Shown here piece by piece: positions 1 to 57,418 of a stretch of DNA of 64,000 nt; the first letter of the stretch is position 1; each line of letters opens with the position of its first letter. Both the position numbers and the translations under genes were made by a program. The notes below the pieces were generated by a model. The model was given only the letters and a program-made list of their open reading frames with translations, did no database searches and was not told where the DNA came from. The DNA lies in sequence record NC_006268.1. One strand, 5' to 3'.

Positions 1-2
1 AT

Positions 3-6394: not shown

Positions 6395-7171
6395 GTGATG
6401 ATAGTCAGACTAGTATCATATTCGCCTGATGGTGAAAAGGTAGTAGCTATTGCGGCTAAAATGAGTAGGAGTAGGAAAGGTTGGGATTATCATGAAAAAG
6501 AAATGACTGATGAAGAGATTGAGACATGGATTAGGGATGCGATTCTACATGGGTATTGGTCTGTGTTAGAGCATTCAGTTTATACTTTTTCTATTGAGGG
6601 AATTTCTAGGGTTGCGTCTCATCAGCTTGTTAGGCATAGAATAGCCTCTTATACGCAAATGTCTCACAGGTTTGCTAGGCCAATAGATGAATATTATAAG
6701 CCAATAATACCTATTAGCATTAAAAAGAGGGATGTTCATGAGCTAGTTAACAAAGCTTACAATAATGCTTATGAAATTTATTATGAATTATTGAAGAGCG
6801 GAATACCCGAAGAGGATGCACGTTATGTTTTACCAAACGCTGTTAATACAAACATCGTAGTAACTATGAATGCTAGGGAATTATATAATTTCTTTTCCCT
6901 AAGGCTCTGTTCAAGAGCTCAATGGGAAATTAGAGCAATTGCATGGAGAATGTTAGAGGAAGTAAAGAAAGTTCACCCAAGATTATTTAGATATGCTGGA
7001 CCAAACTGCATAATACATGAGAATTTCATAAGAAATGAGTATATAACTTTAGATGATGTGCTTAAAAATCACAATATAGAGTTTATATCCCAAAGATGTA
7101 TTGAAGGAGTTAATAGGGATGGAATTATAAAATGCATCATTAACTCACGTGGGGTTATTAACTCGATTTGA
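6395..7171 (+). CDS. thyX: Flavin-dependent thymidylate synthase
   Basis: ThyX signature [11 protein letters not shown], plus GHxSVLEH-like HGYWSVLEH and [12 protein letters not shown]. Confidence 0.96.
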
Positions 7172-7190
7172 AGTGATGAAAACTTATTTA

Positions 7191-7230
7191 CGAATTTCGG
7201 ACTTTTGCTATATACAGGAACTTCGAACTT
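7191..7230 (-). repeat. Inverted 40-bp core of the 139-bp repeat
   Basis: Reverse complement of cgaatttcggacttttgctatatacaggaacttcgaactt matches 50672-50711 with 1 mismatch. Confidence 0.9.
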
Positions 7231-7286
7231 TGATCACTAAATTTTTCCCTTTTTTAAGTTTCATTAGTACGAGAAAAATTCATGAC

Positions 7287-7334
7287 GGTAGTAAATTTAC
7301 AGAATTGTCATTACAATTCTACAAATTTATGGAA
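7287..7334. repeat. 48-bp palindromic element (box-TTGTCATTACAA-box)
   Basis: ggtagtaaatttacagaa ttgtcattacaa ttctacaaatttatggaa. Confidence 0.85.
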
Positions 7335-7467
7335 ACCCCTTTTTTCCCTTATGTTTTTATGACTATAATGTTATGTTAACATGTAATTTTACGTTTTTCA
7401 CTATGGAGCTTATGATAGAAAGTTTTATAAGCTTAAATGACCATACTAATAATCGGTGGGAAACATG
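7335..7467 (+). promoter_or_regulatory. Triplicated promoter cassette, copy 1 (BRE-TATA AGAAAGTTTTATAAGCTTAAA at 7417-7437, SD GGTGG)
   Basis: Collinear similarity with 9372-9503 and 14120-14251. Confidence 0.85.
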
Positions 7468-7917
7468 ATAGATATCGTTCCAGATGGTTTAAGTAAAGAA
7501 TCGTGGGAAAGTATAAGGGAAGAAGTCGCACAAGACCAAGAAGGCCTTCAATTTTTGCAAGGATTCGGTCTTGAAAATCCTGAAAATGCAACATTGGATG
7601 AGATAATTTATGTGCTATCAAAAATCTTAAGAACTTTAGAAGATAATACGAAAATCCAAGAATATCTTGTTCATCTTCAAGAAGTCTTGCAGATGTACGT
7701 GCATATCGAAAGCTGGAGAGACGTTCTTGCCTTAAATGTAGTTTACGTCGTTCCTGAATATGAGAATGAAAGAGCAAAAAAGGCCCACAGAATCCTGATG
7801 TTCTATTTCATGCAGCATCTTCAGCTCAAACTTAATCAAACTCCATTAACAATGAAGAGGGCGAGATTTGTAAGGAATACAATCAAAACCATACGCGAAA
7901 TGGTATTTAATATATAG
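7456..7917 (+). CDS. Hypothetical protein
   Basis: About 150 aa; likely start ATG 7465 downstream of the conserved promoter cassette and GGTGG SD. Confidence 0.75.
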   Translation: MGNMIDIVPDGLSKESWESIREEVAQDQEGLQFLQGFGLENPENATLDEIIYVLSKILRTLEDNTKIQEYLVHLQEVLQMYVHIESWRDVLALNVVYVVPEYENERAKKAHRILMFYFMQHLQLKLNQTPLTMKRARFVRNTIKTIREMVFNI

Positions 7918-7934
7918 GGAAAAATGATAAGGGT

Positions 7935-8798
7935 ATGAAGATCGTTTTAGGCCTGCCTGATGAAAGAGTGAAGTTATGGAAGTTAGGTGTACCGTTAATG
8001 ATTAATCAGTTGGTATGGGACAATGTAGAATGGGAAAATGAAACATGGGTAGATTCTGGTGGCTATCAAATAATGGTTAGAAAAATGCAGATTAGTGTAG
8101 ATGCCGTATTAGATAAATACAAGAGGCTTGATGCAGACTATTACATTAGTCTCGATATACCTGCAACACCTTGCGAAAAGCCTTCAGAGCTTAATTTCAA
8201 GCACTTTGAGTACTTATACACGAGACTAGATAAGAATATAATACCAGTCATTCACGCTTATGATGTTGAAAGTATTAAAAAGGCTATTGATTTCTACTCT
8301 CAATATACGGATTATATCGCCTTTGGTGGGATAGTTCCACCATCTCTTAATAAGGTAGCTAGCCAAAAGCTAGCAGTTGCAATGTACCGCCTTGTTAGGA
8401 AAGAATGGAAGGGTAAAATTCACGTTTTAGGTGCTGGTTCTCCTTTCATGAGAAAGGTTTTTTATGATGCTGATAGTGTTGACACATCAACTTATAGAGT
8501 AAAGGCAATACATGGTATGGTGTTATTGCCTGGAAAAGGAGAAAGATATGTTGGAGAGAGAAAAATAAGTTGGGGGGCTAGACGAATTAGTGAAGATGAA
8601 CTTGAATCGCTAAAGGCTTTTCTAGAGAAGACTCACTACCCATTTCCTATAAGGGTTGATAATTGGATAGATAGATCACTTGTTAACGCATGGGTTTTGT
8701 TACACAGTGAGTATGAGGAAGATAATCCTCTTATCAGATATGCACACAACATAACAGACCCAGAGGCTGAGATAAATGAGTTATGTAGAAAGCTGTGA
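7935..8798 (+). CDS. tRNA-guanine transglycosylase-fold protein, DpdA-like (probable DNA 7-deazaguanine inserting enzyme)
   Basis: TGT motifs DSGGYQ, SLDIP, PVIH, FGG, HVLGAG, DSVDTSTY. No CxCxxC Zn site and no PUA domain. Confidence 0.85.
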   Translation: MKIVLGLPDERVKLWKLGVPLMINQLVWDNVEWENETWVDSGGYQIMVRKMQISVDAVLDKYKRLDADYYISLDIPATPCEKPSELNFKHFEYLYTRLDKNIIPVIHAYDVESIKKAIDFYSQYTDYIAFGGIVPPSLNKVASQKLAVAMYRLVRKEWKGKIHVLGAGSPFMRKVFYDADSVDTSTYRVKAIHGMVLLPGKGERYVGERKISWGARRISEDELESLKAFLEKTHYPFPIRVDNWIDRSLVNAWVLLHSEYEEDNPLIRYAHNITDPEAEINELCRKL

Positions 8799-9339
8799 AC
8801 ACTTAGAGAAATATCTTGGCTCAAATAATGAACCAATAATAAAAAAGCCTGGCTTTGACCCATTCCAACACTCTGTCGTAAGGAAATGGCATGAGTACTT
8901 TCTCAATAACTGGTATTCCAAAAAAGAAAAAGAAATAGCGCTTTTACTGCCTTGCACATCAGTTAAGCCTTATAATAGGTCAGCTACTCATAAATTAGCA
9001 TACTCGTTATTGAGGAAATATAAACTTGAGGATAAGGTTCAGGTTTACTCTGTCTCTGAGCCGATGTTGTTAGTCCCTAGAGAATTAGAGAACTGTTACC
9101 CTTTCAATTCTTATGATTATCCCCCTTCTTTGATGACTGAAGAAGAAAAACAAGAGTTTATCAGACTACTTTCCATTGCCTTATCTCACATTCACAAGAT
9201 TCATAAAAGAATAGTGGCAGTTTTGCCTAAGCATCATTACAAGATAGTTTATGAGGCTTCTAAAAACATCCCAATCGAACTTTATCCTTATGGCAAATTA
9301 GCTTTTAAAACGATAGCAAATGTTATAATGAAGATATGA
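8776..9339 (+). CDS. Archaeosine synthase ArcS-like (DUF5591) protein
   Basis: Exact ArcS motif PC-x3-KPY-x2-S-x2-H (PCTSVKPYNRSATH) plus SEPMLLVPRELE; overlaps the TGT-fold gene by 23 nt. Confidence 0.85.
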   Translation: MSYVESCEHLEKYLGSNNEPIIKKPGFDPFQHSVVRKWHEYFLNNWYSKKEKEIALLLPCTSVKPYNRSATHKLAYSLLRKYKLEDKVQVYSVSEPMLLVPRELENCYPFNSYDYPPSLMTEEEKQEFIRLLSIALSHIHKIHKRIVAVLPKHHYKIVYEASKNIPIELYPYGKLAFKTIANVIMKI

Positions 9340-9348
9340 ACAACTATA

Positions 9349-9371
9349 GACAATTCACCAATTTTATAGAA
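9349..9371. repeat. Right half of the palindromic element
   Basis: gacaa ttcaccaattttatagaa, 10 nt after the ArcS-like stop. Confidence 0.7.
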
Positions 9372-9503
9372 GCCCCTTTTTCCCCTTGTGTCTTTTGTTA
9401 CTACCGTTTATATTTTCACGTAATTTTACGTATTTGACTATGAAGCTCATGGTAGAAAGTTTTATAAGCTTAAAGTGTCACAGTGATAATCGGTGGGAAA
9501 ATG
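9372..9503 (+). promoter_or_regulatory. Triplicated promoter cassette, copy 2 (BRE-TATA at 9454-9474)
   Basis: Drives the multi-RHH array; identical 21-bp core. Confidence 0.85.
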
Positions 9504-9821
9504 GCAGAAAACGAAACCATAAAACTTGTAACTTTCAGATGCGAAGATAGTCTGTTTTTAAAGCTTGAGGAAGAGGCTAAAAAAGCTAACACCACTAAAA
9601 CGGCAATTATAAAGGCTGCAGTGACACGGCTTTTACAGCACAGTATTGATGAGATAAGGGAGTTAAACAAAAGAACTCCGACCTATTCGGGCAAACGCGT
9701 AATCACAATAATGCTTCCTGAGAGTCTTAACACACAACTAAATGCTATTGCAGAAAAAATAAGTACCAACAAGAGTGACTTGATAAGGACTGCGATAGTA
9801 GCTTATTTCAAGATAGCATAA
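9483..9821 (+). CDS. Tandem ribbon-helix-helix protein (2 RHH modules)
   Basis: LVTFRCEDSLFLKLEEEAKKANTTKTAIIKAAV and VITIMLPESLNTQLNAIAEKISTNKSDLIRTAI; likely start ATG 9501. Confidence 0.85.
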   Translation: MIIGGKMAENETIKLVTFRCEDSLFLKLEEEAKKANTTKTAIIKAAVTRLLQHSIDEIRELNKRTPTYSGKRVITIMLPESLNTQLNAIAEKISTNKSDLIRTAIVAYFKIA

Positions 9822-9824
9822 GAG

Positions 9825-10919
9825 GTGGCAAAGATGGCATATTTACGCTTTCCAATGCGTATCTCTTTACTTAATAAAGTAAATGAAGAAGCTGCCCGCT
9901 TAAATGTAAAACGAACACTTTTGCTGAGAGCTGCAATTCACGCATTTATCGAAAACCCGCCAGAGACTATACAACCATTACCAACTCCAATCGGCGGATT
10001 TGGGCGAAAAGAATCAATAAAAGTTTTCTTAACATTGCCAAAAGACACTTTAGAAAAAATTCGTTCTTACGCTGCTGCAAGAGGACTATCAATAAGAAAT
10101 GTAGCAGAGAAGGCAGTAGCTGATTTTCTTAACTTGTCTGATGAACAGAAACTAATTTATATAAATAAGGAGATGGAAAGACTTGCAGAGAAGAGAAAGG
10201 GAAAAATAGACGAAGAGTCTACACTACAATTGCTAGAGCCCGAGGCTTCAAAAGATCCTTCTCTACTGGTTCCAACAAGTTTCAAATGTGTAGATGACTT
10301 ACATAAGCTACTTGCAAAAGAGGCATGTGAAAGGGGAACAACTGCAAGTGAGCTCGTGAGAAGAGCTGTTGAAGAATTTTTGAAAAAATATGGCGATAAC
10401 CTTGAGGAAATCAAAAAGCTATATGAGGTTGCTAAAGACCTGTATTATATGGAGGTTGAGGACAAAACTTGTACTTTAAAAATACCAGTGTATATGACAG
10501 TACAATTAGCAAAAATAGCTAATAAGATGAATGTACCTAAGTCTGCATTAATTCGTCTTGCGATCGTGAAATATCTGAACCTGAGTGACACAAAGCCACA
10601 AAAACACACAAAGCCACAAAAACACATAATCTTCAAATGTGCGGCTAGCCTTGTTTCAATGTTAGAAGAAAAGTCTAAAAAAGCTAACACCGCAAAAGCC
10701 GCAATTGTAAGGGAGGCAGTGAAACAACTTTTACAGCATAGTGCTGATGAGATAAGGGAGTTAAGCAGAAGAAATCCGGCTTGTTCAGCCGACTATCTAG
10801 TTTCCGTAATGCTTCCTGAGAGCCTTAATACTCAGCTAGATATTATTGCAGAAAAAGTAAGGACCACTAAGAACGATCTGATGAGGACTGCATTAGCAGT
10901 TTATTTTAGGCTAGTGTGA
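9825..10919 (+). CDS. Multi-RHH DNA-binding protein (6 RHH modules)
   Basis: Six strand-helix-helix repeats, e.g. PTSFKCVDDLHKLLAKEACERGTTASELVRRAVEEFL; likely start ATG 9834. Confidence 0.85.
   Translation: MAKMAYLRFPMRISLLNKVNEEAARLNVKRTLLLRAAIHAFIENPPETIQPLPTPIGGFGRKESIKVFLTLPKDTLEKIRSYAAARGLSIRNVAEKAVADFLNLSDEQKLIYINKEMERLAEKRKGKIDEESTLQLLEPEASKDPSLLVPTSFKCVDDLHKLLAKEACERGTTASELVRRAVEEFLKKYGDNLEEIKKLYEVAKDLYYMEVEDKTCTLKIPVYMTVQLAKIANKMNVPKSALIRLAIVKYLNLSDTKPQKHTKPQKHIIFKCAASLVSMLEEKSKKANTAKAAIVREAVKQLLQHSADEIRELSRRNPACSADYLVSVMLPESLNTQLDIIAEKVRTTKNDLMRTALAVYFRLV
10588..10623 (+). repeat. Perfect 18-bp tandem duplication in an RHH inter-module linker
   Basis: acacaaagccacaaaaac x2 (TKPQKH twice). 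Confidence 0.9.
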
Positions 10920-10931
10920 GAGGTAACGAAA

Positions 10932-11993
10932 ATGGCGTATTTACACTTATATCTACATAAATCTTTATTAAAGAAAGTAAAGAAAGAAGCATCACGTTTA
11001 AATGTAAAACGAAAACTTTTGATGAGTGCTGCAATTCAGGCATTTGTCGAAAATCCGCCAGAAACCATAAATCTACCGCCAGACTTGAATAACGGATTTG
11101 AACTAACAATTGGCGTTACCTTAGAACTGCCTACCGATGTTGTAGAAAAGATTTATTCTTACGCTATGTCAAAAGGTCTTTCGGCAAAAAAAGTAGCGGA
11201 GATAGCGATAACTACTTTTCTTAGCCTTTCTGATGAACAGAAAATGATCTATATAGATAAGGAGATAAAAAGACTTGAAGAGAAGAGAAAGAGAAAACTA
11301 AGCGAAGAGCGCAAGTTTCAATTTCTGGAAAGTATTGCTTCAAAAGATCCTTCTCGATCAGTTCGAATAAGTTTCAATTGTGTAGATGACTTACATAAAC
11401 TACTTGTAAAAGAGGCACATGTAAGAGGAACAACAGCGAGTGAACTTGTAAGAAGGGCTATTGAAGAATTTTTACAAAACTACTATAAGGGCAAGATAAA
11501 AATAAGAAAGCTGTATGAGGCTACTAAAGACTCGCATTATAGCAAAGCTGGGGGCAAAGTATATGACCTAAAAGTACCTACATATATGCTATTACATTTA
11601 ATGGTAATAGCTGATAATGTGAAGTTGTCTGTGGCTATGCTTATTCGTCTTGCCATTATGAGATATCTAAAGCTGGTTGACATAGAGCCACTAAAACAAG
11701 TAAGCTTCTCATGTGCGGCTAGTCTTATTTTAATGTTAGAGGAGGAGGTTAAAAAAACTAACACCGCAAGAGATGCAATTATAAAGGAGGCAGTGAAACA
11801 ACTTTTACAGCATAGTGTCGATGAGATAAGGGAGTTAAGTAGAGGAACTCCTCCCTATTCAAGCGGCTATGAAGTTTCCGTAAAGCTTCCTGAGAGCCTT
11901 ATCACACAACTAGATGCTATTGCAGAAAAAATAAGGACTAGTAGAAGCAACCTCATAAGAACTGCTTTAGCAGTTTATTTTAGGTTGGTATAA
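10932..11993 (+). CDS. Multi-RHH DNA-binding protein (6 RHH modules), paralog of 9825-10919
   Basis: Collinear similarity to the preceding ORF across all six modules. Confidence 0.85.
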   Translation: MAYLHLYLHKSLLKKVKKEASRLNVKRKLLMSAAIQAFVENPPETINLPPDLNNGFELTIGVTLELPTDVVEKIYSYAMSKGLSAKKVAEIAITTFLSLSDEQKMIYIDKEIKRLEEKRKRKLSEERKFQFLESIASKDPSRSVRISFNCVDDLHKLLVKEAHVRGTTASELVRRAIEEFLQNYYKGKIKIRKLYEATKDSHYSKAGGKVYDLKVPTYMLLHLMVIADNVKLSVAMLIRLAIMRYLKLVDIEPLKQVSFSCAASLILMLEEEVKKTNTARDAIIKEAVKQLLQHSVDEIRELSRGTPPYSSGYEVSVKLPESLITQLDAIAEKIRTSRSNLIRTALAVYFRLV

Positions 11994-11995
11994 GG

Positions 11996-12817
11996 GTGGT
12001 AAAGATGGCATATTTATGCTTTTCAATGCGCAACTCTCTACTTAACAAGGTAAATGAAGAAGCTACCCGCTTAAATGTAAAACGAACACTTTTAATGAAA
12101 GCTGCAATTCAAGCGTTTATTGAAAACCCGCCACAAACCATAAAACCGTTACCAAATGCAATTGGTGGCTTTGGGCGAAAAGAGACAGCAAAAGTTTGTT
12201 TAGCATTACCAAAAGATATCGTAGAAAAGATTTATTCTTATGCTATGTCAAAAGGCCTACCGGCGAGAAAAGTAGCGGAGAAGACAATAGCTGATTTTCT
12301 TAACTTGACTGATAAACAAAAACTAATTTATATAAATAATGAAATAAAAAGAGTTATAGAGAATAGGAAAAGAAAACTAGATAAAGAGCATTCGCTTCAA
12401 TTACTGGAAAATATTGCTTCAAAAGAACCTTATCGGCTAGTTCCAATAAGTTTTAAATGTGTAGATGATCTACATAAACTACTTGCAAAAGAGGCACGTG
12501 AAAGAGGAATAACGGTAAGTGAGCTTGTAAGAAGGGCTATTGATGATCTTTTGCAGAAATATGGTAATAACTTTGAGAAAATCAAAAAGCTGTATGAGGC
12601 TGCTAAACATCTGTATTATATCGAAGTTTCGGCTAAGGATTGTTCCTTAAAAGTGCCTGCATATATGCTATTACAGCTAACTAAAATAGCTGATAAGGTG
12701 AAGTTGCCTAGGACTATACTCATTCGCCTTGCAATTGTGAGATATCTGAACTTGGTTGACGTACATCAAGAGGTTATACAAAGTGTTAGCAGCGCAAACA
12801 TAACACTAGCAGCGTGA
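11996..12817 (+). CDS. Multi-RHH DNA-binding protein (4 RHH modules)
   Basis: Paralog of modules 1-4 of 9825-10919; likely start ATG 12005. Confidence 0.85.
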   Translation: MVKMAYLCFSMRNSLLNKVNEEATRLNVKRTLLMKAAIQAFIENPPQTIKPLPNAIGGFGRKETAKVCLALPKDIVEKIYSYAMSKGLPARKVAEKTIADFLNLTDKQKLIYINNEIKRVIENRKRKLDKEHSLQLLENIASKEPYRLVPISFKCVDDLHKLLAKEARERGITVSELVRRAIDDLLQKYGNNFEKIKKLYEAAKHLYYIEVSAKDCSLKVPAYMLLQLTKIADKVKLPRTILIRLAIVRYLNLVDVHQEVIQSVSSANITLAA

Positions 12818-12822
12818 TGTAA

Positions 12823-14067
12823 ATGAAGTCTCTTGAGTTCATTATTCCTAATGCCTTGTTCGATAAAATAAAAGAAGAAGCAGAACGACTTAATGTGACC
12901 GACAAGCTTTTGATTAAGGCAGCTATTATTACGTTTGCCGAAAACCCTTCAGACGCTATAAAACCACTATCATATAATTATAGCAAAAAAGACTTAACGA
13001 GAATTTACTTATCAGTACCAAAAGATATTATTGAAAAGATTCGTCTTTACTCCAGTTCAAAAGGATTTTCAATTAGGAGAATAGTTTGGAGTATGGTAGA
13101 TGATTTCCTTACTCTAGATGATGAGAAGAAAAAGTTCTATATAGACAAAGTAAAAAGAAGATTATCCAGGTTTAGAGATGATCAAAATCGTCTAACAAAA
13201 CTACAAGAGGCTATAGCTTACGAAAATTTTAATGCGCCAATTTCAGCGAGTTTTAAATGTAATCCTCAGTTATACAAACTAATTGAGGATGAGGTAATAA
13301 AAAAACGCACAACAATAAGTGATCTTGTAAGACAGGCTATTGAAGAGTTTCTGAAAAAGTATGGTAATAACTACGAGGAAATCAAAAAACTACATGAGAC
13401 GGCTAATCAATTATTTCCTGAAAAAGGTCCTTGGAAAGGGCGCGCTATAAAGTTGCCTGCGTATATGTTGCTTCAATTAACAAAGATTTCGGAGCAGACG
13501 TCAGTCCCCAGAAGCGCTATTATTCGCCTTGCAATTATGAAACACATGAATTTGTTAAATAAAAGCACCATAGAACAGCAGAAGGTTACAAGAAATGAAG
13601 TATTAAACGATCCGCCAAATGACCCACCATCCAATGATCCCCCACAACAAAATAATAAAGACGAACTTGAGCAAGTAATACGTTTTGTTAATGTATCACT
13701 GCCAGACCCACTTTATAATTTATTAAAGAAATATGTAATGCTTAAGTACAATATTGATGATGAAAGACAGATTAAGCTTGAAGTTAGTAAAATTGTTGCA
13801 AAAGTATTGATACAATGGGCAAGGAGACGCTTCTTTAAGAGGCCTGATATTGAAACTTATGTGATATGGCAAAAGATTTTAGAAGAGCTAAAGACGAGCC
13901 TTTATCCTAGCCTGAGCAGAGGAACAGTGGTGAAGAAGCAGGATATTCAAGATGCAATGAAGGAAATAAAAGATGTTAAAAATATAACAGAGTTATTTGA
14001 AAAATTTAAGAGGCGTGGCTATCTAAAGGAAATCGATAAAGACAACGTTAAAATTCTACTCTTGTAA
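12823..14067 (+). CDS. Multi-RHH protein (4 modules) with NDPP linker and an additional C-terminal domain (possible RHH plus winged helix)
   Basis: Modules 1-4 are paralogous to its neighbours, followed by an NDPPNDPPSNDPP linker. The C-terminus ELFEKFKRRGYLKEIDKDNVKILLL resembles a wHTH wing. Confidence 0.8.
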   Translation: MKSLEFIIPNALFDKIKEEAERLNVTDKLLIKAAIITFAENPSDAIKPLSYNYSKKDLTRIYLSVPKDIIEKIRLYSSSKGFSIRRIVWSMVDDFLTLDDEKKKFYIDKVKRRLSRFRDDQNRLTKLQEAIAYENFNAPISASFKCNPQLYKLIEDEVIKKRTTISDLVRQAIEEFLKKYGNNYEEIKKLHETANQLFPEKGPWKGRAIKLPAYMLLQLTKISEQTSVPRSAIIRLAIMKHMNLLNKSTIEQQKVTRNEVLNDPPNDPPSNDPPQQNNKDELEQVIRFVNVSLPDPLYNLLKKYVMLKYNIDDERQIKLEVSKIVAKVLIQWARRRFFKRPDIETYVIWQKILEELKTSLYPSLSRGTVVKKQDIQDAMKEIKDVKNITELFEKFKRRGYLKEIDKDNVKILLL

Positions 14068-14071
14068 GTTT

Positions 14072-14119
14072 TTCAGTAAAATTACAGAATTGTCATGTTA
14101 GTTCTACAAATTTGTGGAA
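14072..14119. repeat. 48-bp palindromic element
   Basis: ttcagtaaaattacagaa ttgtcatgttag ttctacaaatttgtggaa. Confidence 0.85.
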
Positions 14120-14251
14120 ATCCCTTTTTCCCCTTGTGTTTTTGTGACTATCGTGTTAAATTAACATGTGACTTTACGTATTTGACTATGGAGTTTATGA
14201 GAGAAAGTTTTATAAGCTTAAATGAACACAATAATAATCGGTGAAAAAATG
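14120..14251 (+). promoter_or_regulatory. Triplicated promoter cassette, copy 3 (BRE-TATA at 14202-14222)
   Basis: Identical 21-bp core. Confidence 0.85.
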
Positions 14252-17642: not shown

Positions 17643-17975
17643 TTGCAATTTTACCATATGAGTGGGCACACATTAGAACTCATCCTAAAGCCCATTGATT
17701 TTCGAAAAGCTACAACAAAAGAAGAAAAAGAAGCTATAAAAAAATATGTTAACAGAAATTATAGTATAATAGAAGTTAATAAAAATGGGCAAGAAATAGA
17801 AATAAAAATCGCATATGAGAAACTACCAGATGCTGTTTTAATCAAAGACAGCTTAATAAATGATTGCGTATTAAATTACAAGATTGGTAGACTCGTAATT
17901 AAGAGTACTGGAATGGCTATTAAACTTGTCCCTGGGAAGCTTGTTGAACGTAAACCAGTCTCTACTTCATTATAG
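17643..17975 (+). CDS. Hypothetical protein
   Basis: ORF only; likely start ATG 17658. Confidence 0.65.
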   Translation: MQFYHMSGHTLELILKPIDFRKATTKEEKEAIKKYVNRNYSIIEVNKNGQEIEIKIAYEKLPDAVLIKDSLINDCVLNYKIGRLVIKSTGMAIKLVPGKLVERKPVSTSL

Positions 17976-17994
17976 AAAGTTTTATAAGTTTGAA
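17974..17994 (+). promoter_or_regulatory. Strong BRE-TATA promoter variant
   Basis: agaaagttttataagtttgaa upstream of 18020. Confidence 0.75.
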
Positions 17995-18019
17995 TGTTCA
18001 CTAGATTTATGAGGGAAAA

Positions 18020-18322
18020 ATGTTGAAGACAATACCCTTCAAAATAGACTACAAAATGCTCTTCTTAGATCTAGATGAAGAAACGAATGACGTGTATGCT
18101 TACTTGACAGACCCAAACCTAAAGCTGGAAAGGCGTGAAAAATTTAGAGAATTCACGGAATTCAAAAACTTCATTGATGAATTAAGTAGAGACTACATCA
18201 TAAAGCCTGTAGCTGGCTATGTCAATCAAAATGGTAATGAGCCTAAACTATCATTTTTGATAGTTGTACTATTTAAAAAGCCTGTAGCTGCTGATGTTCA
18301 ATATACAACAACAGTGAATTAA
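18020..18322 (+). CDS. Hypothetical protein
   Basis: 100 aa; preceded by the AGAAAGTTTTATAAG promoter. Confidence 0.75.
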   Translation: MLKTIPFKIDYKMLFLDLDEETNDVYAYLTDPNLKLERREKFREFTEFKNFIDELSRDYIIKPVAGYVNQNGNEPKLSFLIVVLFKKPVAADVQYTTTVN

Positions 18323-19120: not shown

Positions 19121-19639
19121 ATGATTTTCAGTGATAGAGATTTAAAATATTACTTGGAAAAGGGATGGATAAAGATTGAGCCGTTAAGAGAAGACACTAT
19201 TAGGGAAAATGGGGTAGATTTAAGGATTGGTAACGAGATTGTTAGATTCAAGAAAAATAGGATTTTTGATCCTGACAAAGATTCCATAGATGATTTTATA
19301 GAGAAAGAGGTGGGGAATGAGTTTATAATAAATCCCCATGAGCATGTATTATTAGTTACAGAAGAATATGTAAAATTGCCTAATGATGTAATGGCATTCG
19401 TAAATCTTAGATCAACATTTGCTAGATTAGGTCTTTTCATTCCTCCAACTATCGTAGATGCAGGATTTGAAGGACAATTAACTATAGAGTTAGTAGGATC
19501 AGAATTCCCAATAAAACTAAAATATGGAATGAGATTTATCCACCTAATCTTCGCAAAAACACTAACACCAGTTGAAAAGCCATATAATGGAAAATATCAG
19601 AAACAAAGAGGAGTGACGCCGGCTAAGCTTTTAAGTTGA
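19121..19639 (+). CDS. dcd: dCTP deaminase (dUTPase superfamily)
   Basis: MIFSDRDL start, [40 protein letters not shown]. Confidence 0.9.
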
Positions 19640-19644: not shown

Positions 19645-19692
19645 TTCTACCAATTTACAGAATTGTCATGACAATTCTGTAATTTTGGTGAA
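19645..19692. repeat. 48-bp palindromic element
   Basis: ttctaccaatttacagaa ttgtcatgacaa ttctgtaattttggtgaa, 5 nt after the dcd stop. Confidence 0.9.
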
Positions 19693-30571: not shown

Positions 30572-30657
30572 TTCGGTAAATTTACCAAATTCTTACTTGT
30601 TGAACATATTTTGGTAAATTTGCTGAATTATCATGACAATTCGGTAGATTTGAAGAA
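30572..30657. repeat. Single box (30572-30589) plus full 48-bp element (30610-30657)
   Basis: ttcggtaaatttaccaaa; tttggtaaatttgctgaa ttatcatgacaa ttcggtagatttgaagaa. Confidence 0.85.
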
Positions 30658-36548: not shown

Positions 36549-37097
36549 ATGGCAAAAAAGGAGAATGAACAACAACAGGCTGCGAAAGCATCTGAGAAAT
36601 CTATCGTAGCAAGGCTTGATCCTCTCCTAGTCGCTAGAAGCCTAGAACAAGCAGTAATGTCTGCACGAGTTCCTACAGACAACCTGGTGGAAAAGGATTT
36701 ACAAGCCGCTAACCAACTTGTAGCAGCAGTTGCAAAGGATATCGAAGAATTGGTAAAGCCAGTTTACCTTGAAGGATGGCAGAGATTCTCAATATCTGCA
36801 TCAACGCTAGAGGCAGACTTCAGTAGAATACTTACATCGATTCTTGAGGTGTTAGAATCATATCTCATTGAAATAAGGAAGTACATTCAAACAAGACTAA
36901 GAGAGGCCCTAGAGGCAAGAGATGTTGAAAAACTAAGACAATATGGCTATATGCTAACCATTTTACAAAGGGCTATCGTCATCGCAGTTTATAACATATT
37001 ACAATCTATTGTAGGTAAAATAAAGGTCAACTTGCCTCTAACATATGGTTCACAAGAATACAATCACGCTGTAATTGGAGTTGCGCACTTAGACTAA
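36549..37097 (+). CDS. Hypothetical helical protein
   Basis: 182-aa ORF followed by a T-run. Confidence 0.8.
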   Translation: MAKKENEQQQAAKASEKSIVARLDPLLVARSLEQAVMSARVPTDNLVEKDLQAANQLVAAVAKDIEELVKPVYLEGWQRFSISASTLEADFSRILTSILEVLESYLIEIRKYIQTRLREALEARDVEKLRQYGYMLTILQRAIVIAVYNILQSIVGKIKVNLPLTYGSQEYNHAVIGVAHLD

Positions 37098-37233
37098 TTT
37101 TTTCGAACTTTTGAAACCATTTAATGCTTTATTTTTCACGTAATAAGTTCGAAGTTCCTGTATATAGCAAAAGTTAGAATTTCGAAAGTGAAAGTAGATG
37201 AGTGAAAACCTTTGGTAAATTTACTGAAGTCAT
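37095..37233 (+). repeat. 139-bp intergenic direct repeat, copy 1
   Basis: 6 mismatches versus 50622-50760; starts exactly at a TAA stop codon. Confidence 0.95.
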
Positions 37234-37256
37234 GATAATTCTGTAGATTTATAGAA
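37211..37256. repeat. Palindromic element with 10-bp spacer
   Basis: tttggtaaatttactgaa gtcatgataa ttctgtagatttatagaa. Confidence 0.8.
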
Positions 37257-37298
37257 CGACCTAGTTTATGCGGTAAAAAAGTAAAGTTTATTAAGAGA

Positions 37299-42328: not shown

Positions 42329-42360
42329 CTCGTATATATTTTTAAACTACTTATATTTAA

Positions 42361-42482
42361 CCTTGTCACCCCACAGTTAGGAGGGGATGTTGAGCCTCAA
42401 CCTTACGGTTCACTGTGACAACTTGCCACTCTACGTAAGGGTCATGGGCCCCCTTCGAGCCCCAAGGCATGAGGCTCACATC
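42361..42482. ncRNA. Candidate structured non-coding RNA (three-way junction)
   Basis: 57% GC (68/120 counted over 42361-42480) in AT-rich intergenic DNA; nested stems 42386-42399/42470-42482 and 42400-42407/42434-42442 plus a hairpin at 42446-42463. Confidence 0.5.
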
Positions 42483-42564
42483 TAAGTGTTATCAATATAG
42501 ACATAGTTGTAAAAATTAATAAACTTTACTTTTTCACATCGTAAGCTAGGTATGAGTGAAACCC

Positions 42565-42612
42565 TTCTCCAAAACTGGAGAATTGTAATTACAGTTCTGC
42601 AAATTTGGTAAA
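42565..42612. repeat. 48-bp palindromic element
   Basis: ttctccaaaactggagaa ttgtaattacag ttctgcaaatttggtaaa. Confidence 0.8.
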
Positions 42613-48023: not shown

Positions 48024-48575
48024 CTACGAATTTGCGATACGGGCTAAGTAATCTTCCGCCTCCTTCGTTTGAACATAAGTCAGAATGTGGCGCAAGCTCT
48101 TATGGCCAGTTATTTTTGCAACTACTTCAGCTGGTAATCCATCTTTTATTGCTTTTGTTATAAAAGCATAACGGAAAGAGTGCGTATTTACGCCATAGCG
48201 CCTTTTGCAAAACATCTTCACTGCTGCGATCATTTTCCTTTCACTTTTTGTAAGTATGATGGAATAGTACTTTTTGTAAGTGATTATTTTGGGGATGATG
48301 ATTTTTCTTTCATTCCCGCCTTTTTCAGCCTTTAAAATGATTGTTCTTTCTTTGCCACCAACTTCTACAAATTGGTAGAAAGCCTTAACTGCTTCGCCTA
48401 TTCGTGTACCATTTAAAAGCTGTGTAAGTAAAATTGCAACGTAAATCTCTTTATCAAAATCCTCAGTGGAGTTTTGTGAGAATTGCTTATAGTCTTTTTC
48501 TAAGGTTTTTCTCATCTTGTCAAAGTCAACTCCCTTGTCCCACTTGAATATTGTCTTCCCTTCTTCTATTGCCAC
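48024..48575 (-). CDS. Tyrosine recombinase/integrase (catalytic domain only, 183 aa)
   Basis: Catalytic set R (GTRIGE), K (AEKGG), HxxR (HSFR), H (TGH), Y (LTYV). Confidence 0.92.
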   Translation of the reverse strand: MAIEEGKTIFKWDKGVDFDKMRKTLEKDYKQFSQNSTEDFDKEIYVAILLTQLLNGTRIGEAVKAFYQFVEVGGKERTIILKAEKGGNERKIIIPKIITYKKYYSIILTKSERKMIAAVKMFCKRRYGVNTHSFRYAFITKAIKDGLPAEVVAKITGHKSLRHILTYVQTKEAEDYLARIANS

Positions 48576-48610: not shown

Positions 48611-48628
48611 TTCTGTAAAATTGTAGAA
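48611..48628. repeat. Single 18-bp box upstream of the recombinase
   Basis: ttctgtaaaattgtagaa. Confidence 0.75.
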
Positions 48629-48699: not shown

Positions 48700-48719
48700 A
48701 GAAAAACAGACCCTAACAT

Positions 48720-49904: not shown

Positions 49905-49975
49905 TTTTGCTCCCTATATAGTCGTTTTTATTTTGGCAGGAAAAAAGCTTAAATGAAATGAAAAAACAAATAAGC

Positions 49976-50116: not shown

Positions 50117-50156
50117 CTCATTACTAATCTCTTTATACTTATTTTTAAACTTTTAT

Positions 50157-50624
50157 GTGATGCGAAACGTTTTTAAACAAAAGATAGAAAAAATAAAAAT
50201 GATGACAACGATCAATGCATTTCAACTGGATGAGCTGAAGACAAAGCTATACTATGAGGCCTTTGCTGCTGGAATGCAATCAATAATAAATGAATTTTAT
50301 AAAAAAGGTATCTCACCTATTCAAATTAGCGATGAATATGTTCTTGATGATGACTACTTTAATCAACAAGTCACATTTGACGATAATGGTACATTCAAGA
50401 TAATAAGTACAATAAGGCATTACAGCCTAAATGGCGAAAAAGAAATCTTAATTGATTTTATCTACACACAAGGTGAACAAAAGGCAACAATGCAAATAAT
50501 TGCGAGAACTAATGATAACATATTTGTTGGACCAGAGATTGATTATCAAAAATACTTAGAGATCTATTACGATGTGGTAGATAAGCTGGCCTCTGAACTT
50601 GATTCTGAGCTTGATAAGGAATAA
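50157..50624 (+). CDS. Hypothetical acidic protein
   Basis: ORF; true start likely one of the downstream ATGs near 50199. Confidence 0.75.
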   Translation: MMRNVFKQKIEKIKMMTTINAFQLDELKTKLYYEAFAAGMQSIINEFYKKGISPIQISDEYVLDDDYFNQQVTFDDNGTFKIISTIRHYSLNGEKEILIDFIYTQGEQKATMQIIARTNDNIFVGPEIDYQKYLEIYYDVVDKLASELDSELDKE

Positions 50625-50760
50625 TTTTTTCGAACTTTTGAAATCACTTAACGCTTTATTTTTCACGTAATAAGTTCGAAGTTCCTGTATATAGCAAAAG
50701 TTCGAAATTCGAAAGTGAAAGCAGATGAGTGAAAACCTTTGGTAAATTTACTGAAGTCAT
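50622..50760 (+). repeat. 139-bp intergenic direct repeat, copy 2
   Basis: 6 mismatches versus 37095-37233; contains a 12-bp inverted repeat 50629-50640/50695-50706. Confidence 0.95.
50738..50760. repeat. Left half of the palindromic element
   Basis: tttggtaaatttactgaa gtcat, abutting the 3' end of the alpha-class methylase. Confidence 0.75.
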
Positions 50761-50767
50761 AGCAAAT

Positions 50768-52006
50768 CTATCTAACCTTTTTCAACACCACTAGGTGCTC
50801 AGTTTTGATCCTACTGTCTTCCAGCCCAGTGGCCGGATTTACATCTGCTTCGAACATTACGCGAGAAACTATTTTATCAACATAGGTAACTTCATGCCGC
50901 CAGCCGAACTCTCTCAAGTGTTCAGTTACTATATCATCTATTGGAATAGGTAAATTCCGTATCTTAGCTGGGCCAACAAAGATGAACATGTAATCTACCA
51001 CTCTTTCACCTAACGTAGCGAATGCCTGCAAAATTGCATTAAAGTAATTGTCATAAAGTGCCCTAAGATGGCTTTCTGTTATTTTTTCTCTGAGGGTGTA
51101 GTACGTTTCTGAAAAAATGTTTGTACTTTTTACTTGTCTATAAGGAATCTCTTTTTTACTTAGCGATTGTATGTACTTCTCGTCGTAACCTAGCCAAAAC
51201 AGCTCAAGCTTCGTAGACCTAATATACTCTTGTGCTTGCAAGTAAGGTGGAGATGTGATAAGTGCATTAACTTCTTTATCTAGTCTGGTTTCCAACGTGT
51301 CAATACCGGCTTTTAACTCATAATCTACCGCTTTAGGCTTAAGATGATTGTACTCTTCTATTTTCCTAATAAGCGTAAGTATTTCATTCTTTAACATGTT
51401 ATAAAATTTGGCTTTCCAATTTGTTTTAAGAAGTGTTTCTACTTTCTGTTTAGAGTATTTTGACTTAAATAGCTTATGAACCTTTTCGTCACTATACGAA
51501 AAGTATCGCGTAACCTTGAGTAGCGGTATTAATAGCAAATATTTTTTCTTGTCTGTAATTGAGTGGGCGAACCCCCATGCTTTCGAAAGAAGAGGGAGAA
51601 ACTCCTCCGGGAACCAATAATTTAGGTTAGACCATTTGGGGAGGAATTCCTCTCGAGAGTTCATCAAATCTTTCATTATCTTTTCAACATCCGCTTCTGC
51701 CCTTGTCATGATAGCTGTATTATGTGTGACATTTATTATCGGGTTTAACTCCCATAACACATAACTATGCCCATACACTCTTGATACGACACCAACTGTA
51801 CCATAACCAGCAAAAGGGTCAAACACCTTCATGCCTGGCTTGCAGTAAGTCTTCAGTATATAAGCAACAACCTGCGGAATGAATTTAGCGGGATATCGAT
51901 AAATAGCAAATGTTCCGTATGTAGTTGTTGGAATTTCCGGGATCATGTTCCTAAAAACTACGGGAACCCTTTGAGAACCTTCAGACGATACCGTCATAAT
52001 TATCAT
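50768..52006 (-). CDS. Amino-methyltransferase, alpha class, probable N4-cytosine DNA methylase
   Basis: YRYPAKFIPQ, motif I FDPFAGYGT near the N-terminus, motif IV ITSPPY in the C-terminal half. Confidence 0.88.
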   Translation of the reverse strand: MIIMTVSSEGSQRVPVVFRNMIPEIPTTTYGTFAIYRYPAKFIPQVVAYILKTYCKPGMKVFDPFAGYGTVGVVSRVYGHSYVLWELNPIINVTHNTAIMTRAEADVEKIMKDLMNSREEFLPKWSNLNYWFPEEFLPLLSKAWGFAHSITDKKKYLLLIPLLKVTRYFSYSDEKVHKLFKSKYSKQKVETLLKTNWKAKFYNMLKNEILTLIRKIEEYNHLKPKAVDYELKAGIDTLETRLDKEVNALITSPPYLQAQEYIRSTKLELFWLGYDEKYIQSLSKKEIPYRQVKSTNIFSETYYTLREKITESHLRALYDNYFNAILQAFATLGERVVDYMFIFVGPAKIRNLPIPIDDIVTEHLREFGWRHEVTYVDKIVSRVMFEADVNPATGLEDSRIKTEHLVVLKKVR

Positions 52007-52018
52007 TTAATGAAATCT

Positions 52019-52390: not shown

Positions 52391-52436
52391 TTTCTTTCAC
52401 CCCACCTTCACATTACATTTTGTTGTAATTTACTAG

Positions 52437-52451
52437 TATATAAATCTTTCT
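52437..52451 (-). promoter_or_regulatory. Strong BRE-TATA promoter variant
   Basis: agaaagatttatata on the minus strand upstream of the AbrB gene and alpha-class methylase. Confidence 0.7.
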
Positions 52452-52490
52452 ATAATAGTGATGAAAACAAACTTCGGAAAAATGAACTAC

Positions 52491-53480: not shown

Positions 53481-53514
53481 ACAAAAAACTTTTACCTTTA
53501 TAGCATTATAAACA

Positions 53515-55257: not shown

Positions 55258-55299
55258 TAAGTGATATCATATGTCGTAATATTTTAAATTTTTAGGCTT

Positions 55300-55347
55300 T
55301 TCTCCAAAATTACCAAATTGTCATGACAATTCGGCAAATTGGTAGAA
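55300..55347. repeat. 48-bp palindromic element
   Basis: ttctccaaaattaccaaa ttgtcatgacaa ttcggcaaattggtagaa. Confidence 0.9.
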
Positions 55348-55359
55348 AAGTCAGAAGGG

Positions 55360-56322
55360 TTATTTGATGGCTTTTTCAAAAGCTTGGATTTCCTTTTTAG
55401 TTAGCTTTTCAAACTCTTCCTTTAAGTACTTTATAGCCTTGTGAATTGCCATTATTGGGTTTTCTACACTAAACCCAGTTTTGTATATCTTTGTTGAATC
55501 AAGCAGTAAGTAGTTTGGCTCAACTGGCCTTGGATTTTCCATCCAACTTATCTTTCCTTCCCAGCCCAATTCCTTAGCAACAATAGAAACAGTTTCTGAC
55601 AGCGTCAGAACGTGATTATATACACTATAATGTACTGATACGTTATACACTCCTTCCATCTTATCTAAGTTTTTAATAGCGTGTAAGTAAGCGTTCACGT
55701 GGTCCTCCCAGTACATCCATTGCCTGCTTGAGAGAGGATGGCCATCGTAATGTATTTCTTTCGCACCGCTCAACATTGCTAAAACGGTTTTTTCAAAGAA
55801 GTATCCTCTTGCCTCTTCCGGCAAACGTGAAATTGGCCTACCGATCGTGTTAATAGGCCTTAAGATGATTGTTTTTTCCTTTCTACCAGCAAGTAGCATC
55901 TCTGACGCTATTTTTGAAACTGCATAAGGACTGGTTGGTGTCCTATAAACCTCCTCTTCCTTATAATAGTGAGGGTAAGGCGTATAAGGGTAGACTTCGG
56001 CGGTTGAAGCGTGAATTAATGGGGCCTCTGCCATCGCTATGTTATATGCTATAATTGCGTTATTCATGAAAGAAGTGTCCTCGTAGCTAAGCCTAACAGG
56101 CGTTTTTGAGGCTAAATTAATAACCAAATCAGGCTTTACCTTTCTTAACAAATCCCTTACTTTTTCTCTATCTGTGAGATCAACAAAAACGTACTCAGCA
56201 GCTGAATCAACTATGTTGTTGGAAAAATGGTCCTTATTTGCAACACATACTACTTTATCATTGTTTAGTCTCTTAAGGAGTTGAGAACCGATAAAGCCCG
56301 TACAGCCAGTGATTAAGATCAT
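55360..56322 (-). CDS. NAD-dependent nucleotide-sugar epimerase/dehydratase (extended SDR)
   Basis: ITGCTGFIG, HASTAEVY, YAVSK, RPINTIG. Confidence 0.92.
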   Translation of the reverse strand: MILITGCTGFIGSQLLKRLNNDKVVCVANKDHFSNNIVDSAAEYVFVDLTDREKVRDLLRKVKPDLVINLASKTPVRLSYEDTSFMNNAIIAYNIAMAEAPLIHASTAEVYPYTPYPHYYKEEEVYRTPTSPYAVSKIASEMLLAGRKEKTIILRPINTIGRPISRLPEEARGYFFEKTVLAMLSGAKEIHYDGHPLSSRQWMYWEDHVNAYLHAIKNLDKMEGVYNVSVHYSVYNHVLTLSETVSIVAKELGWEGKISWMENPRPVEPNYLLLDSTKIYKTGFSVENPIMAIHKAIKYLKEEFEKLTKKEIQAFEKAIK

Positions 56323-56389
56323 GTGATAGTTAATGTAATCATTATTTTTAAATATTTCTTCTTGCTGAAATATGAATTGCTAAACAGAA

Positions 56390-56407
56390 TTCTCCAAATT
56401 GGTAGAA
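56390..56407. repeat. Single 18-bp box
   Basis: ttctccaaattggtagaa, 5 nt from the beta-class methylase stop. Confidence 0.75.
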
Positions 56408-56412
56408 ACAGA

Positions 56413-57306
56413 TCATTTTTGCGTGACTGTCCTTTGCCTTTTAACTTTTTCTTGAAGCCAGCTTCTTAGCCGTTTAGCATCATCCCTTATAATTATCTCG
56501 AAATTCGATGAATCAGAATTAAACAGTTTAGCGTGATCTATTCCTAACTTCTTTTTCACCACGTCAAGAAGTTCCAGGTCAATTTCATAGCCAACTGCTT
56601 TTCTTCTTAATTCAACAGCTACCTTTAATGTTGTTGCAGAACCCATGAATGGGTCCAAAACAGTTTCACCAACATAAGAAAATAATTTTATCAATCTGTA
56701 AGGAATCTCTTCTGGGAAGGCCGCTATTCCTTCTTCAATTCTACCTTTAACTGGTAGAACGTTTGTAATCTCCCATACAGAAAGATACCACTTTTCTCTA
56801 TTAAATTCCTGTATGTCAATTCTTGACGATTCTAATTCTGCCTTGTTTTTAGGGTACTTATATTCGCCTTTTTGCATAATCAAAATCTCCTCGTATATAT
56901 TGTCTGGATAGAAGTACATTGGGTATGGATGCTGTAACTGCACTCCACTTCGTCTACTTATCCTAACATAACCCTCTGGCTTTTTCCAGATAATCCTATC
57001 GCGATAAGTGAAACCTTCCTCCATCATTATCCTAAGAATGTCCGCAGTTACTGGGTACAATTTCCCATTAATTCTAACATCTTGCGTCACGAAACAGGCT
57101 ATCCTACCTTCTGCCAAAACCCTATATAGTTCCCTAGCCACATCTCTTATCAATCCAAGAAATTCATCGTAATCCTTAAATAAATCTGGATAATCAAAGG
57201 GGGCGTTAAAGTATGGAGGTGAAGTAACCACTAAGTGAACTGAACCATCCGAAATTTCTTTCATGTTTCTACTGTCACCAAAAACTATCAGATTTCCTTG
57301 AGGCAT
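56413..57306 (-). CDS. Amino-methyltransferase, beta class (N4-C/N6-A DNA methylase)
   Basis: Motif IV VTSPPY at the N-terminus; AAFPEEIPYRLIK and motif I LDPFMGSATT at the C-terminus. Confidence 0.92.
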   Translation of the reverse strand: MPQGNLIVFGDSRNMKEISDGSVHLVVTSPPYFNAPFDYPDLFKDYDEFLGLIRDVARELYRVLAEGRIACFVTQDVRINGKLYPVTADILRIMMEEGFTYRDRIIWKKPEGYVRISRRSGVQLQHPYPMYFYPDNIYEEILIMQKGEYKYPKNKAELESSRIDIQEFNREKWYLSVWEITNVLPVKGRIEEGIAAFPEEIPYRLIKLFSYVGETVLDPFMGSATTLKVAVELRRKAVGYEIDLELLDVVKKKLGIDHAKLFNSDSSNFEIIIRDDAKRLRSWLQEKVKRQRTVTQK

Positions 57307-57370
57307 TTTGTAACTGTTATTAATCCCACGCTCTTATTTTTTTCCGCGGTACAGTAGTGGGTCACATTCG

Positions 57371-57418
57371 TTCTGTAAATTGGTAGAATTGTCATGACAA
57401 TTCTACCAATTTACAGAA
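57371..57418. repeat. Perfect 48-bp palindrome (type copy of the element)
   Basis: ttctgtaaattggtagaattgtcatgacaattctaccaatttacagaa equals its own reverse complement. Confidence 0.97.

Follow-up and report, generated by a model that had tools for sequence, protein, structure and literature searches.

A family of short repeats punctuates the genome of the archaeal spindle virus Sulfolobus virus STSV1, and on balance we favour the view that they are protein-bound punctuation marks at the borders of transcription units that also act as recombination hotspots, like the promoter-early stem-loop (PeSL) motifs of phages. The window analysed here is a stretch of 64,000 nucleotides of record NC_006268.1 (record positions 11295-75294; window position 1 is record position 11295, and window positions are used below unless another genome or contig is named). 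An earlier note on the same DNA had proposed that accessory, host-like genes are bracketed by a palindrome and are inserted or swapped at its centre, TCATGA, by the viral tyrosine recombinase in the manner of an integron. The palindrome is real and every spacing that the note quoted is correct; a viral recombinase running an integron-like cassette system is not established. The viruses compared are STSV1 to STSV4, of which STSV2 is complete and STSV3 and STSV4 are drafts whose contigs end at repeats.

Anatomy of the repeat family

The full element spans 48 bp, with an 18-bp box (TTCnnnAAATTTnnnGAA) on each side of a 12-bp core (TTGTCATGACAA). The window holds nine copies of the full form (E1 to E9, Table 1) and at least eight solitary boxes or halves, and there are about 17 copies of the 18-48 bp sequence per genome. 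With up to three mismatches allowed, GAATTGTCATGACAATTC occurs eight times (centred at 7310, 14095, 19668, 30633, 42588, 55323, 57394 and 61879) where 0.03 occurrences are expected; the copy centred at 61879 lies beyond the range of the earlier note (6395-57418). A position matrix for the 18-bp box, made from 16 arms, gives 28 matches in the window as against about one in shuffles, and it adds a further full copy, the ninth, whose core is shortened (37211-37256), as well as solitary boxes at 9354, 30572, 48363, 48611, 50738, 56390, 57961 and 58027. These motif counts rule out a chance origin. The repeating unit is the 18-bp box, and the 48-bp palindrome is two boxes flanking a core; the repeats are multi-copy extragenic palindromes that occur as singlets and as inverted doublets. 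This discrete family is annotated in neither the STSV1 nor the STSV2 record. The STSV1 GenBank record marks TATA boxes and ribosome-binding sites and none of the box-core-box repeats, and a paper search with the core sequence matched no archaeal or viral paper. In STSV1 outside the window (record 1-11294), no core and a single weak box near the origin were found; a weak box, TTAGGCAAATTTAGAGAA, is kept in the origin-proximal intergenic region of both STSV1 and STSV2 (L003:186-203 and STSV2 224-241).

Across 25 full copies collected from STSV1, STSV2 and the draft contigs of STSV3 and STSV4, little or no variation is seen in GAA/TTC, AAATTT and most of the core, the invariant positions being GAA, T-T, AT, A and TTC, and the two triplets of each box vary freely, taking one of a few forms (TAC, TGT, GGT, TCC and ACC). 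Complementarity between the left and right box of an element is no higher than between boxes picked from different elements (12.5 vs 12.35 of 18, P=0.31), and the self-complementarity of the triplets inside a single box is not maintained (P=0.17-0.30). Only E7 is a perfect palindrome, and most other copies are poor ones. When folded as single-stranded DNA, the nine STSV1 copies range from -2.8 to -21.3 kcal/mol, the strongest hairpins being those of E7 (-21.3) and E3 (-14.2), and four of the nine are no better than shuffles. A conserved hairpin, cruciform or RNA element was rejected on the lack of covariation, the wide spread of folding energies and the lack of an Rfam match. Because the sequence is conserved and the fold is not, recognition would take place on duplex DNA, by a dimeric binding protein or a recombinase, with no hairpin involved. 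Both the core dyad (GAATTG-TCATGA-CAATTC) and the box dyad (TTCnnn-AAATTT-nnnGAA) have inverted arms around a 6-bp spacer. A tRNA-like att site was also rejected, as the window contains no tRNA.

Position relative to genes and promoters

Intergenic DNA in the window comprises 35 gaps of at least 40 bp, 6,290 nt in all, and a box or element is present in 14 of them; one box lies inside the integrase gene. In all eight regions where a gene end adjoins a copy (E2, E3, 9354, E5, E6, 56390, 57961 and 50738), the copy begins 0-21 nt past the stop codon, which under uniform placement within the same gaps has a P of about 3e-7. In three further cases a TTCGAA-rich unit of about 130 bp stands between the stop codon and the box. 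The core of this unit is a 43-nt TTCGAA-rich repeat, AAGTTCGAAGTTCCTGTATATAGCAAAAGTTCGAAATTCGAAA, which is found at 7188-7230 (inverted), 37145-37187 and 50672-50714 and also in the insert carried by STSV2 and STSV3 at the E4 locus. In co-directional gaps the copy is always closer to the upstream stop than to the downstream start. Four of the copies are flanked by divergent genes, and genes beside elements are found on both strands.

The copies stand 12 to about 90 nt from annotated TATA boxes, and they are therefore not classical promoter-overlapping operators; most element-adjacent genes have a TATA box of their own in the GenBank record. A 174-nt module headed by the repeat and closed by a conserved promoter, GAAAGTTTTATAAG, is found at three copies (E1, 9354 and E2); the other copies have no fused promoter. 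The promoter and its leader (GAAAGTTTTATAAG ... AATCGGTG) precede six genes (550-604, 5372-5426, 7409-7463, 9446-9500, 14194-14248 and 17966-18020), and GAAAGTTTTATAAG resembles the early/anti-defence promoters reported for STSV1 and STSV2 (PMC11065993).

Box 57961 is nested within CTTGAC...GTCAAG. The 855 bp from 57960 to 58814 hold no open reading frame (ORF) of 45 aa or more, contain C-runs and GCAGC-type repeats (58121-58240) and are about 85% conserved in STSV2 and STSV3; this stretch may be a non-coding RNA or a cis-acting site.

Gain, loss and duplication at the repeats

The alignment of STSV1 with STSV2 has ten breaks in its main chain, and the draft genomes add more. We counted 11 intergenic gain, loss or duplication events (Table 1), a number that excludes indels within repetitive coding sequence of ORF34 and ORF54. 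In nine of the 11, a box lies within 20 nt of a boundary; 17% of intergenic positions are that close to a box, so the P value is about 9e-4. The earlier note had suggested testing whether breakpoints of gene gain and loss among related genomes coincide with the elements; the outcome is positive, and in this respect its interpretation is supported. Judged from these alignments, the elements mark most of the variable points among STSV1-4.

The boundaries themselves are varied. They fall at the box centre (events 9 and 11), at TCATGA (event 8, the E9 chimera and the end of ORF61), at box edges (events 4 and 7) or in dispersed repeats other than the elements, such as the early promoter and unit U, and divergence blurs some of the junctions. 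The single exchange point at TCATGA that had been proposed does not fit this distribution. The ORF14 event, with its boundary in the conserved promoter, points to repeat-driven recombination in general. The E9 chimera was joined between GTCAT and GA: its left half is that of the copy at 50738, and its right half, TCATGATAATTCTGTAGATTT, matches 21 nt of E6 in STSV3 and STSV4. The two copies of the ORF60/ORF61 intergenic unit form a 151-bp repeat (37092-37242 and 50619-50769) with 93% identity.

At E6, the extra ORF of about 350 bp in STSV2, STSV3 and STSV4 (STSV2_63) has its stop within the second TCATGA. The E7 locus of STSV2 has lost the core and holds a small ORF and an IS605 tnpB, and STSV3 has a single element in place of the box, ORF66 and E7. 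This last product would be expected if box 56390 had recombined with the left box of E7, of which it is a direct repeat (16/18 identical); the absence of ORF66 is judged on the STSV3 contigs examined, and the gene could sit on another contig. The left box of E8 forms a junction with an ORF's 3' remnant; STSV3 and STSV4 have this ORF intact, and STSV2 lacks it. In STSV1, sequence internal to that ORF is fused there to a half box, TTTACAGAA, and STSV3 and STSV4 have a half core.

Conservation among relatives

In STSV2, STSV3 and STSV4 the elements lie at orthologous intergenic sites. Between orthologous copies, the box triplets diverge far more than the flanks; in the left box of E3, six variable positions differ between STSV1 and STSV4 beside a flank that is 96% identical, and the STSV3 copy of E3 has the layout of E4 (box, 20-nt spacer, element). 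Boxes are therefore swapped among copies or evolve very fast.

As a possible sign of module exchange, a clear step in identity is found only at the RHH cluster between the 9354 and E2 modules (72-79% to STSV2 inside vs 92-97% outside); at other elements the signal is confounded by gene constraint. This cluster, ORF20-24 (9483-14067), consists of tandem multi-RHH-domain genes in repeat units of about 1.09 kb and is expanded in STSV2. ORF54 (1549 aa) has four internal repeats of about 594 nt (43351-46453), and their copy number or register differs from STSV2. Relatedness is mosaic: STSV1 is nearest to STSV2 in some stretches (among them 14.5-19.5 kb and 37.5-41 kb) and to STSV4 in others (such as 20-21 kb and 23.5-27 kb, with identity of up to 99%).

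Scans for the exact core in IMG/VR, in one genome per prokaryotic species and in metagenome contigs returned STSV1 itself and unboxed chance matches only, and such scans would let diverged cores escape. No Sulfolobales genome of the species collection contained the exact core, and protein-seeded IMG/VR scans found STSV1 and STSV2 only. SMV1 has neither boxes nor core-like sites nor a palindrome family.

Table 1. Repeat copies, associated features and gain, loss or duplication events (window positions unless stated otherwise)
Feature	Position	Strand	Remarks
E1, full element	7287..7334		115 nt past thyX stop; heads 174-nt element and early promoter module 7290-7463
Right half only (GACAA and box)	9349..9371		9-14 nt past stop (9339) of DUF5591/ArcS-like ORF19
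Second element and promoter module	9327-9500		Headed by right half 9349-9371
E2, full element	14072..14119		4 nt past ORF24 stop; heads third module 14075-14248
E3, full element	19645..19692		5 nt past dcd/dut stop (dcd ends 19639)
Solitary box	30572..30589		STSV2 and STSV3 have a 164-184 bp insert here between two direct boxes
E4, full element	30610..30657		Between divergent ORF37 and ORF38
Copy of ORF60/ORF61 intergenic unit (unit U and element left half)	37092..37242	+	Twin at 50619-50769
E9, full element, 10-nt core	37211..37256		Inside 198-bp insert 37098-37295, STSV1 only
IS200/IS605 tnpB deletion derivative (right end and left end)	42360..42560	-	Left end 13 nt from E5 box
E5, degenerate full element	42565..42612		21 nt past ORF53 stop; IS605-tnpB remnant abuts
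ORF56, tyrosine-recombinase catalytic domain, 183 aa	48024..48575	-	Candidate enzyme of the model in the earlier note
Box inside integrase ORF	48363..48380		Kept in STSV2, STSV3 and STSV4
Box	48611..48628		35 nt upstream of integrase start; left edge of STSV2 335-bp tandem duplication
Box and GTCAT (left half)	50738..50760		GTCAT contains ORF61 methylase stop; box is 50738-50755
E6, full element	55300..55347		12 nt past epimerase stop
Solitary box	56390..56407		5 nt past ORF66 N4-methylase stop; 16/18 direct repeat of E7 left box
E7, perfect 48-nt palindrome	57371..57418		Midway between ORF66 and ORF67, 64 nt from each start
Two solitary boxes	57961-57978, 58027-58044		First begins 1 nt past ORF67 stop
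E8, full element	61856..61903		Between divergent ORF71 and ORF72
Event 1			ORF14 (STSV1) vs element and promoter module (STSV2 12288); right boundary in conserved promoter
Event 2			ORF17 locus directly right of E1; 0, 1 and 2 paralogues in STSV2, STSV1 and STSV4
Event 3			RHH gene cluster expansion
Event 4	30572		164-184 bp insert in STSV2 and STSV3, bounded by two direct boxes
Event 5			198-bp insert with E9, STSV1 only; flanked by 7-nt direct repeat AGACTAA
Event 6			At E5: IS605-tnpB, left box and core in STSV1 and STSV2 vs lone box in STSV3
Event 7			335-bp tandem duplication in STSV2; begins at box 48611
Event 8			STSV2_63 (about 350 bp) between E6 and a second TCATGA with half element; present in STSV2, STSV3 and STSV4, absent from STSV1
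Event 9			STSV2 E7: small ORF and IS605-tnpB; hybrid box (TTCTGTAAATT joined to TACAGAA) and lone right box left, core gone
Event 10			ORF66 N4-methylase loss in STSV3; one element (L007:18573-18620) joins wcaG flank to ORF67 flank
Event 11			Extra coiled-coil ORF at E8 in STSV3 and STSV4; cleanly absent from STSV2; part-deleted in STSV1, ending mid left box

Host-like genes

Pfam matches in the window include thyX, a DCD/dUTPase-like gene, a DUF5591 (ArcS C-terminal-like) gene beside a TGT-like ORF, two N6_N4 methylases, an NAD-dependent epimerase and a protein with a Phage_integrase domain, ORF56. The neighbourhoods that the earlier note described for these genes hold up: the full elements after dcd (whose stop and element lie at 19639 and 19645) and after thyX, the lone right half after the ArcS-like gene (ending at 9339), the elements on both sides of the epimerase (E6 past its stop and a box upstream), and the box and perfect palindrome (57371-57418, 64 nt upstream of the start) around the ORF66 methylase. 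The ORF61 methylase is a mixed case. Its stop does lie in a left half's GTCAT, at the very point where the match of the 151-bp repeat ends; however, this is not a clean break, for STSV2 has a full core at the same site, which reads GTCATGACAA, and the right arm has decayed inside the 3' coding end of the methylase.

These genes are not being swapped at present. In STSV2, and in STSV3 and STSV4 as far as contigs are available, the thyX and dcd genes, the TGT/DUF5591 pair and the epimerase gene are found at unchanged positions. The ORF12 and ORF61 methylases and the glycosyl-transferase genes are likewise stable, and ORF66 alone varies. SMV1 has none of the STSV host-like genes, which indicates that they were acquired in the STSV lineage. 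Enrichment of host-like genes next to boxes is weak (7/11 vs 18/52 of the others, P=0.075), and elements flank core genes too (ORF37/38, ORF52/53 and ORF71/72). The cargo that actually varies consists of small ORFs of unknown function and insertion sequence (IS) elements.

IS200/IS605 elements beside the boxes

Two full-length IS200/IS605 tnpB copies are present in STSV2. STSV1 has a remnant made of a right end and a left end (42360-42560) and a left-end scrap (37259-37294), and STSV3 has a 43-bp mini-copy of the tnpB element (L010, about 691-733). Over 45 bp, the STSV1 remnant shares 87% identity with SMN2, a miniature inverted-repeat transposable element (MITE) annotated in SMV1. All four readable IS left-end junctions (E5, STSV2 E7, 37257 and L010:671) lie 2-13 nt from a box, and part of the half-site pattern (STSV2 E7 and the right side of E9) is due to IS insertions. 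The IS sites also include L012 and L009 1-232. Three other IS copies in STSV3 and STSV4 are far from boxes, one of them inside the ORF12 methylase, and IS copies in STSV4 interrupt this methylase and the ORF26/27 junction. We considered whether the box is part of the IS605 left end and rejected this: the right end of the IS is boxless, boxes occur at conserved sites where there is no IS, and three IS copies are distant from any box.

Discussion

We suggest that the boxes and cores would be conserved double-stranded recognition sites, most likely for a dimeric DNA-binding protein. Such sites would punctuate the STSV genome, mostly right after stop codons and upstream of the next promoter and sometimes midway between divergent promoters, with three of them joined to the conserved early promoter in a composite module; such positions would be in keeping with a boundary or termination role. 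With so many copies of one 18-48 bp sequence in each genome (about 17), recombination or breakage at the copies would reshuffle the modules between them. Recombination of one copy with another, general rather than site-specific, together with breakage and mis-repair, would remove, add, duplicate or swap single-gene modules, and IS200/IS605 tnpB elements would tend to land beside the sites.

Several observations weigh against this proposal. Archaeal termination requires oligo-T, not palindromes, and runs of at least five T are found at only 10/50 outer flanks of the elements. The four copies between divergent genes have nothing to terminate. Boundaries at dyad centres (the STSV2 hybrid box, the E8 half box of STSV1, and TCATGA at ORF61, STSV2_63 and E9) fit site-specific exchange or breakage at the centre, and not homologous crossover. 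The comparison also draws on four genomes, two of them drafts, with events delimited by the analyst and BLAST ends that are drawn towards repeats.

Those dyad-centre boundaries could come from palindrome fragility, in which stalled forks, or hairpins and cruciforms cut by host nucleases (Mre11-Rad50, Hjc/Hje), would be followed by microhomology end-joining to give indels from the dyad centres, with the repeats persisting for another reason or selfishly. Dyad-centre breaks are indeed joined to unrelated sequence, as where ORF sequence meets the half box TTTACAGAA at E8 of STSV1, the 7-nt direct repeat AGACTAA flanks the 198-bp insert, and E7 and E3 could form very stable hairpins. However, hairpin breakage explains most copies poorly, as the majority make poor palindromes: at 37 C four of nine copies fold no more stably than shuffles do, and host growth takes place near 75-80 C. 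Arm complementarity is not under selection, E7, the perfect palindrome, is intact in STSV1, and the events at direct boxes (ORF66, 30572 and 48611) need recombination between repeats, not breaks at centres. We regard fragility as an improbable cause of the pattern as a whole.

The same boundaries could be read as exchange points of ORF56, which would exchange strands at a 6-bp dyad centre (TCATGA of the core or AAATTT of the box), so that circles of gene and box are excised and re-inserted at other copies. Core and box both have the arm-spacer-arm shape of tyrosine-recombinase core sites, and the junctions that would be expected at dyad centres are seen in the GTCAT and GA halves of E9, in the STSV2 join of TTCTGTAAATT to TACAGAA and at E8 (a half box in STSV1, a half core in STSV3 and STSV4). 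ORF61 and STSV2_63 both end in TCATGA, and the loss of ORF66 looks like an excision between direct boxes. The enzyme has HxxR and Tyr motifs that align with XerA, and its box-I Arg presumably lies in NGTRIGEA, directly before the FYQFVE encoded by the intragenic box. With one box inside the integrase gene and one just upstream of it in all four STSVs, a link between integrase and repeats is possible, although no cassette array follows.

Against this stand the variable exchange points, the use of repeats other than the elements, and the half sites, since conservative exchange between two full sites would yield two full hybrids and no half sites. The supposed cassettes come with TATA boxes of their own and are found in both orientations, and most elements and host-like genes keep their positions over four genomes. 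ORF56 is a catalytic domain alone (PF00589 at residues 26-172, E=5.8e-9) and lacks an N-terminal DNA-binding domain. Its identity among STSV1-4, whose genomes are about 85% identical overall, is 93-98%, and homologues with 39-45% identity make ORF56 a core gene of the large spindle viruses (ATV, SMV1-4, ATSV and SYV1/2), which suggests a conserved housekeeping role such as dimer resolution. As the enzyme is common to these viruses and SMV1 has no repeats, it is not tied to the repeat family, and the recombinase-site link of the earlier note is not supported. We therefore think it decidedly unlikely that ORF56 runs an integron-like exchange. By the same token, there is only a slim chance that the box and core dyads are true sites of this minimal 183-aa integrase, with which STSVs would excise and capture single-gene modules such as methylases and small early ORFs; if so, they would be an archaeal-virus counterpart of the integron that acts on double-stranded sites.

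Finally, the repeats could be selfish ones of the REP/REPIN or MITE kind, without viral function and spread by a host IS200/IS605-type (Y1/RAYT-like) transposase. In keeping with this, they are extragenic, near gene 3' ends and in inverted doublets and singlets as in REP/BIME, and at four sites a box is abutted, at a distance of 2-13 nt, by a copy or scrap of an IS200/IS605 tnpB element. This reading is very unlikely given that the copies sit at orthologous, non-polymorphic sites in four genomes, lack both target-site duplications and the hairpin-preserving covariation that the folded single-stranded site of a Y1 transposase would require, accompany no annotated tnpA or RAYT in STSV1 or STSV2, have an exact core found in no Sulfolobales genome of the species collection, and are far from three IS insertions in STSV3 and STSV4.

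Gene gain and loss in archaeal viruses are poorly understood. As a marker of most variable points among STSV1-4, the family predicts where new genes, circles and junctions are to be sought, and the 48-bp element would serve as a probe for its binding protein and as a candidate boundary or terminator signal of a crenarchaeal virus. The repeats would also allow the role of the short integrase common to large spindle viruses to be tested.

Comparison with known systems

The STSV repeats share with the attC/attI sites and IntI of integrons their imperfect palindromes at gene 3' ends, which sometimes overlap the stop codon, the accessory genes between sites, and a tyrosine recombinase gene in the genome with an adjacent site. 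In contrast, integrons have an IntI-type enzyme beside attI and a common promoter, promoterless cassettes in one orientation that end in attC, and one fixed exchange position, none of which is found in STSV. Moreover, attC acts as a folded single strand whose structure is conserved and whose sequence varies, and the STSV repeats show the reverse. Like the core sites dif, loxP and FRT, the STSV dyads have inverted arms of 6-9 bp around a 6-bp spacer; unlike them, the STSV element has three overlapping dyads and about 17 copies per genome, and its spacers are palindromic and hence directionless.

With the REP, BIME and REPIN families of bacteria, the repeats have in common that they are extragenic palindromes downstream of genes, in singlets and inverted doublets, that they are hotspots of recombination and IS insertion, and, probably, that they are protein-binding sites. 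They differ in being viral, positionally conserved and without stem covariation, and no RAYT is annotated in STSV1 or STSV2. The SMN MITEs and IS200/IS605 orfB elements of Sulfolobus are represented by the deletion derivatives at 42360-42560 and by the scraps at 37259 and L010:691, which are neighbours of the boxes and not boxes themselves, the right end being boxless.

The closest documented parallel, by analogy, is with the PeSL motifs, composite terminator/promoter elements through which modules are shuffled in T4-type phages (PMC2839356, PMC4122927). STSV1 is an archaeal virus with archaeal promoters, most of its copies have no promoter attached, the palindrome has no conserved stem-loop and only putative terminator activity, and some breaks fall at dyad centres. 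Nevertheless, both systems consist of short conserved intergenic repeats at gene boundaries, and in both the indels, replacements and duplications among close relatives are bounded by the motif. As in PeSLs, three STSV1 palindromes are fused to an early promoter in the 174-nt module, and the cargo is mainly small ORFs of unknown function.

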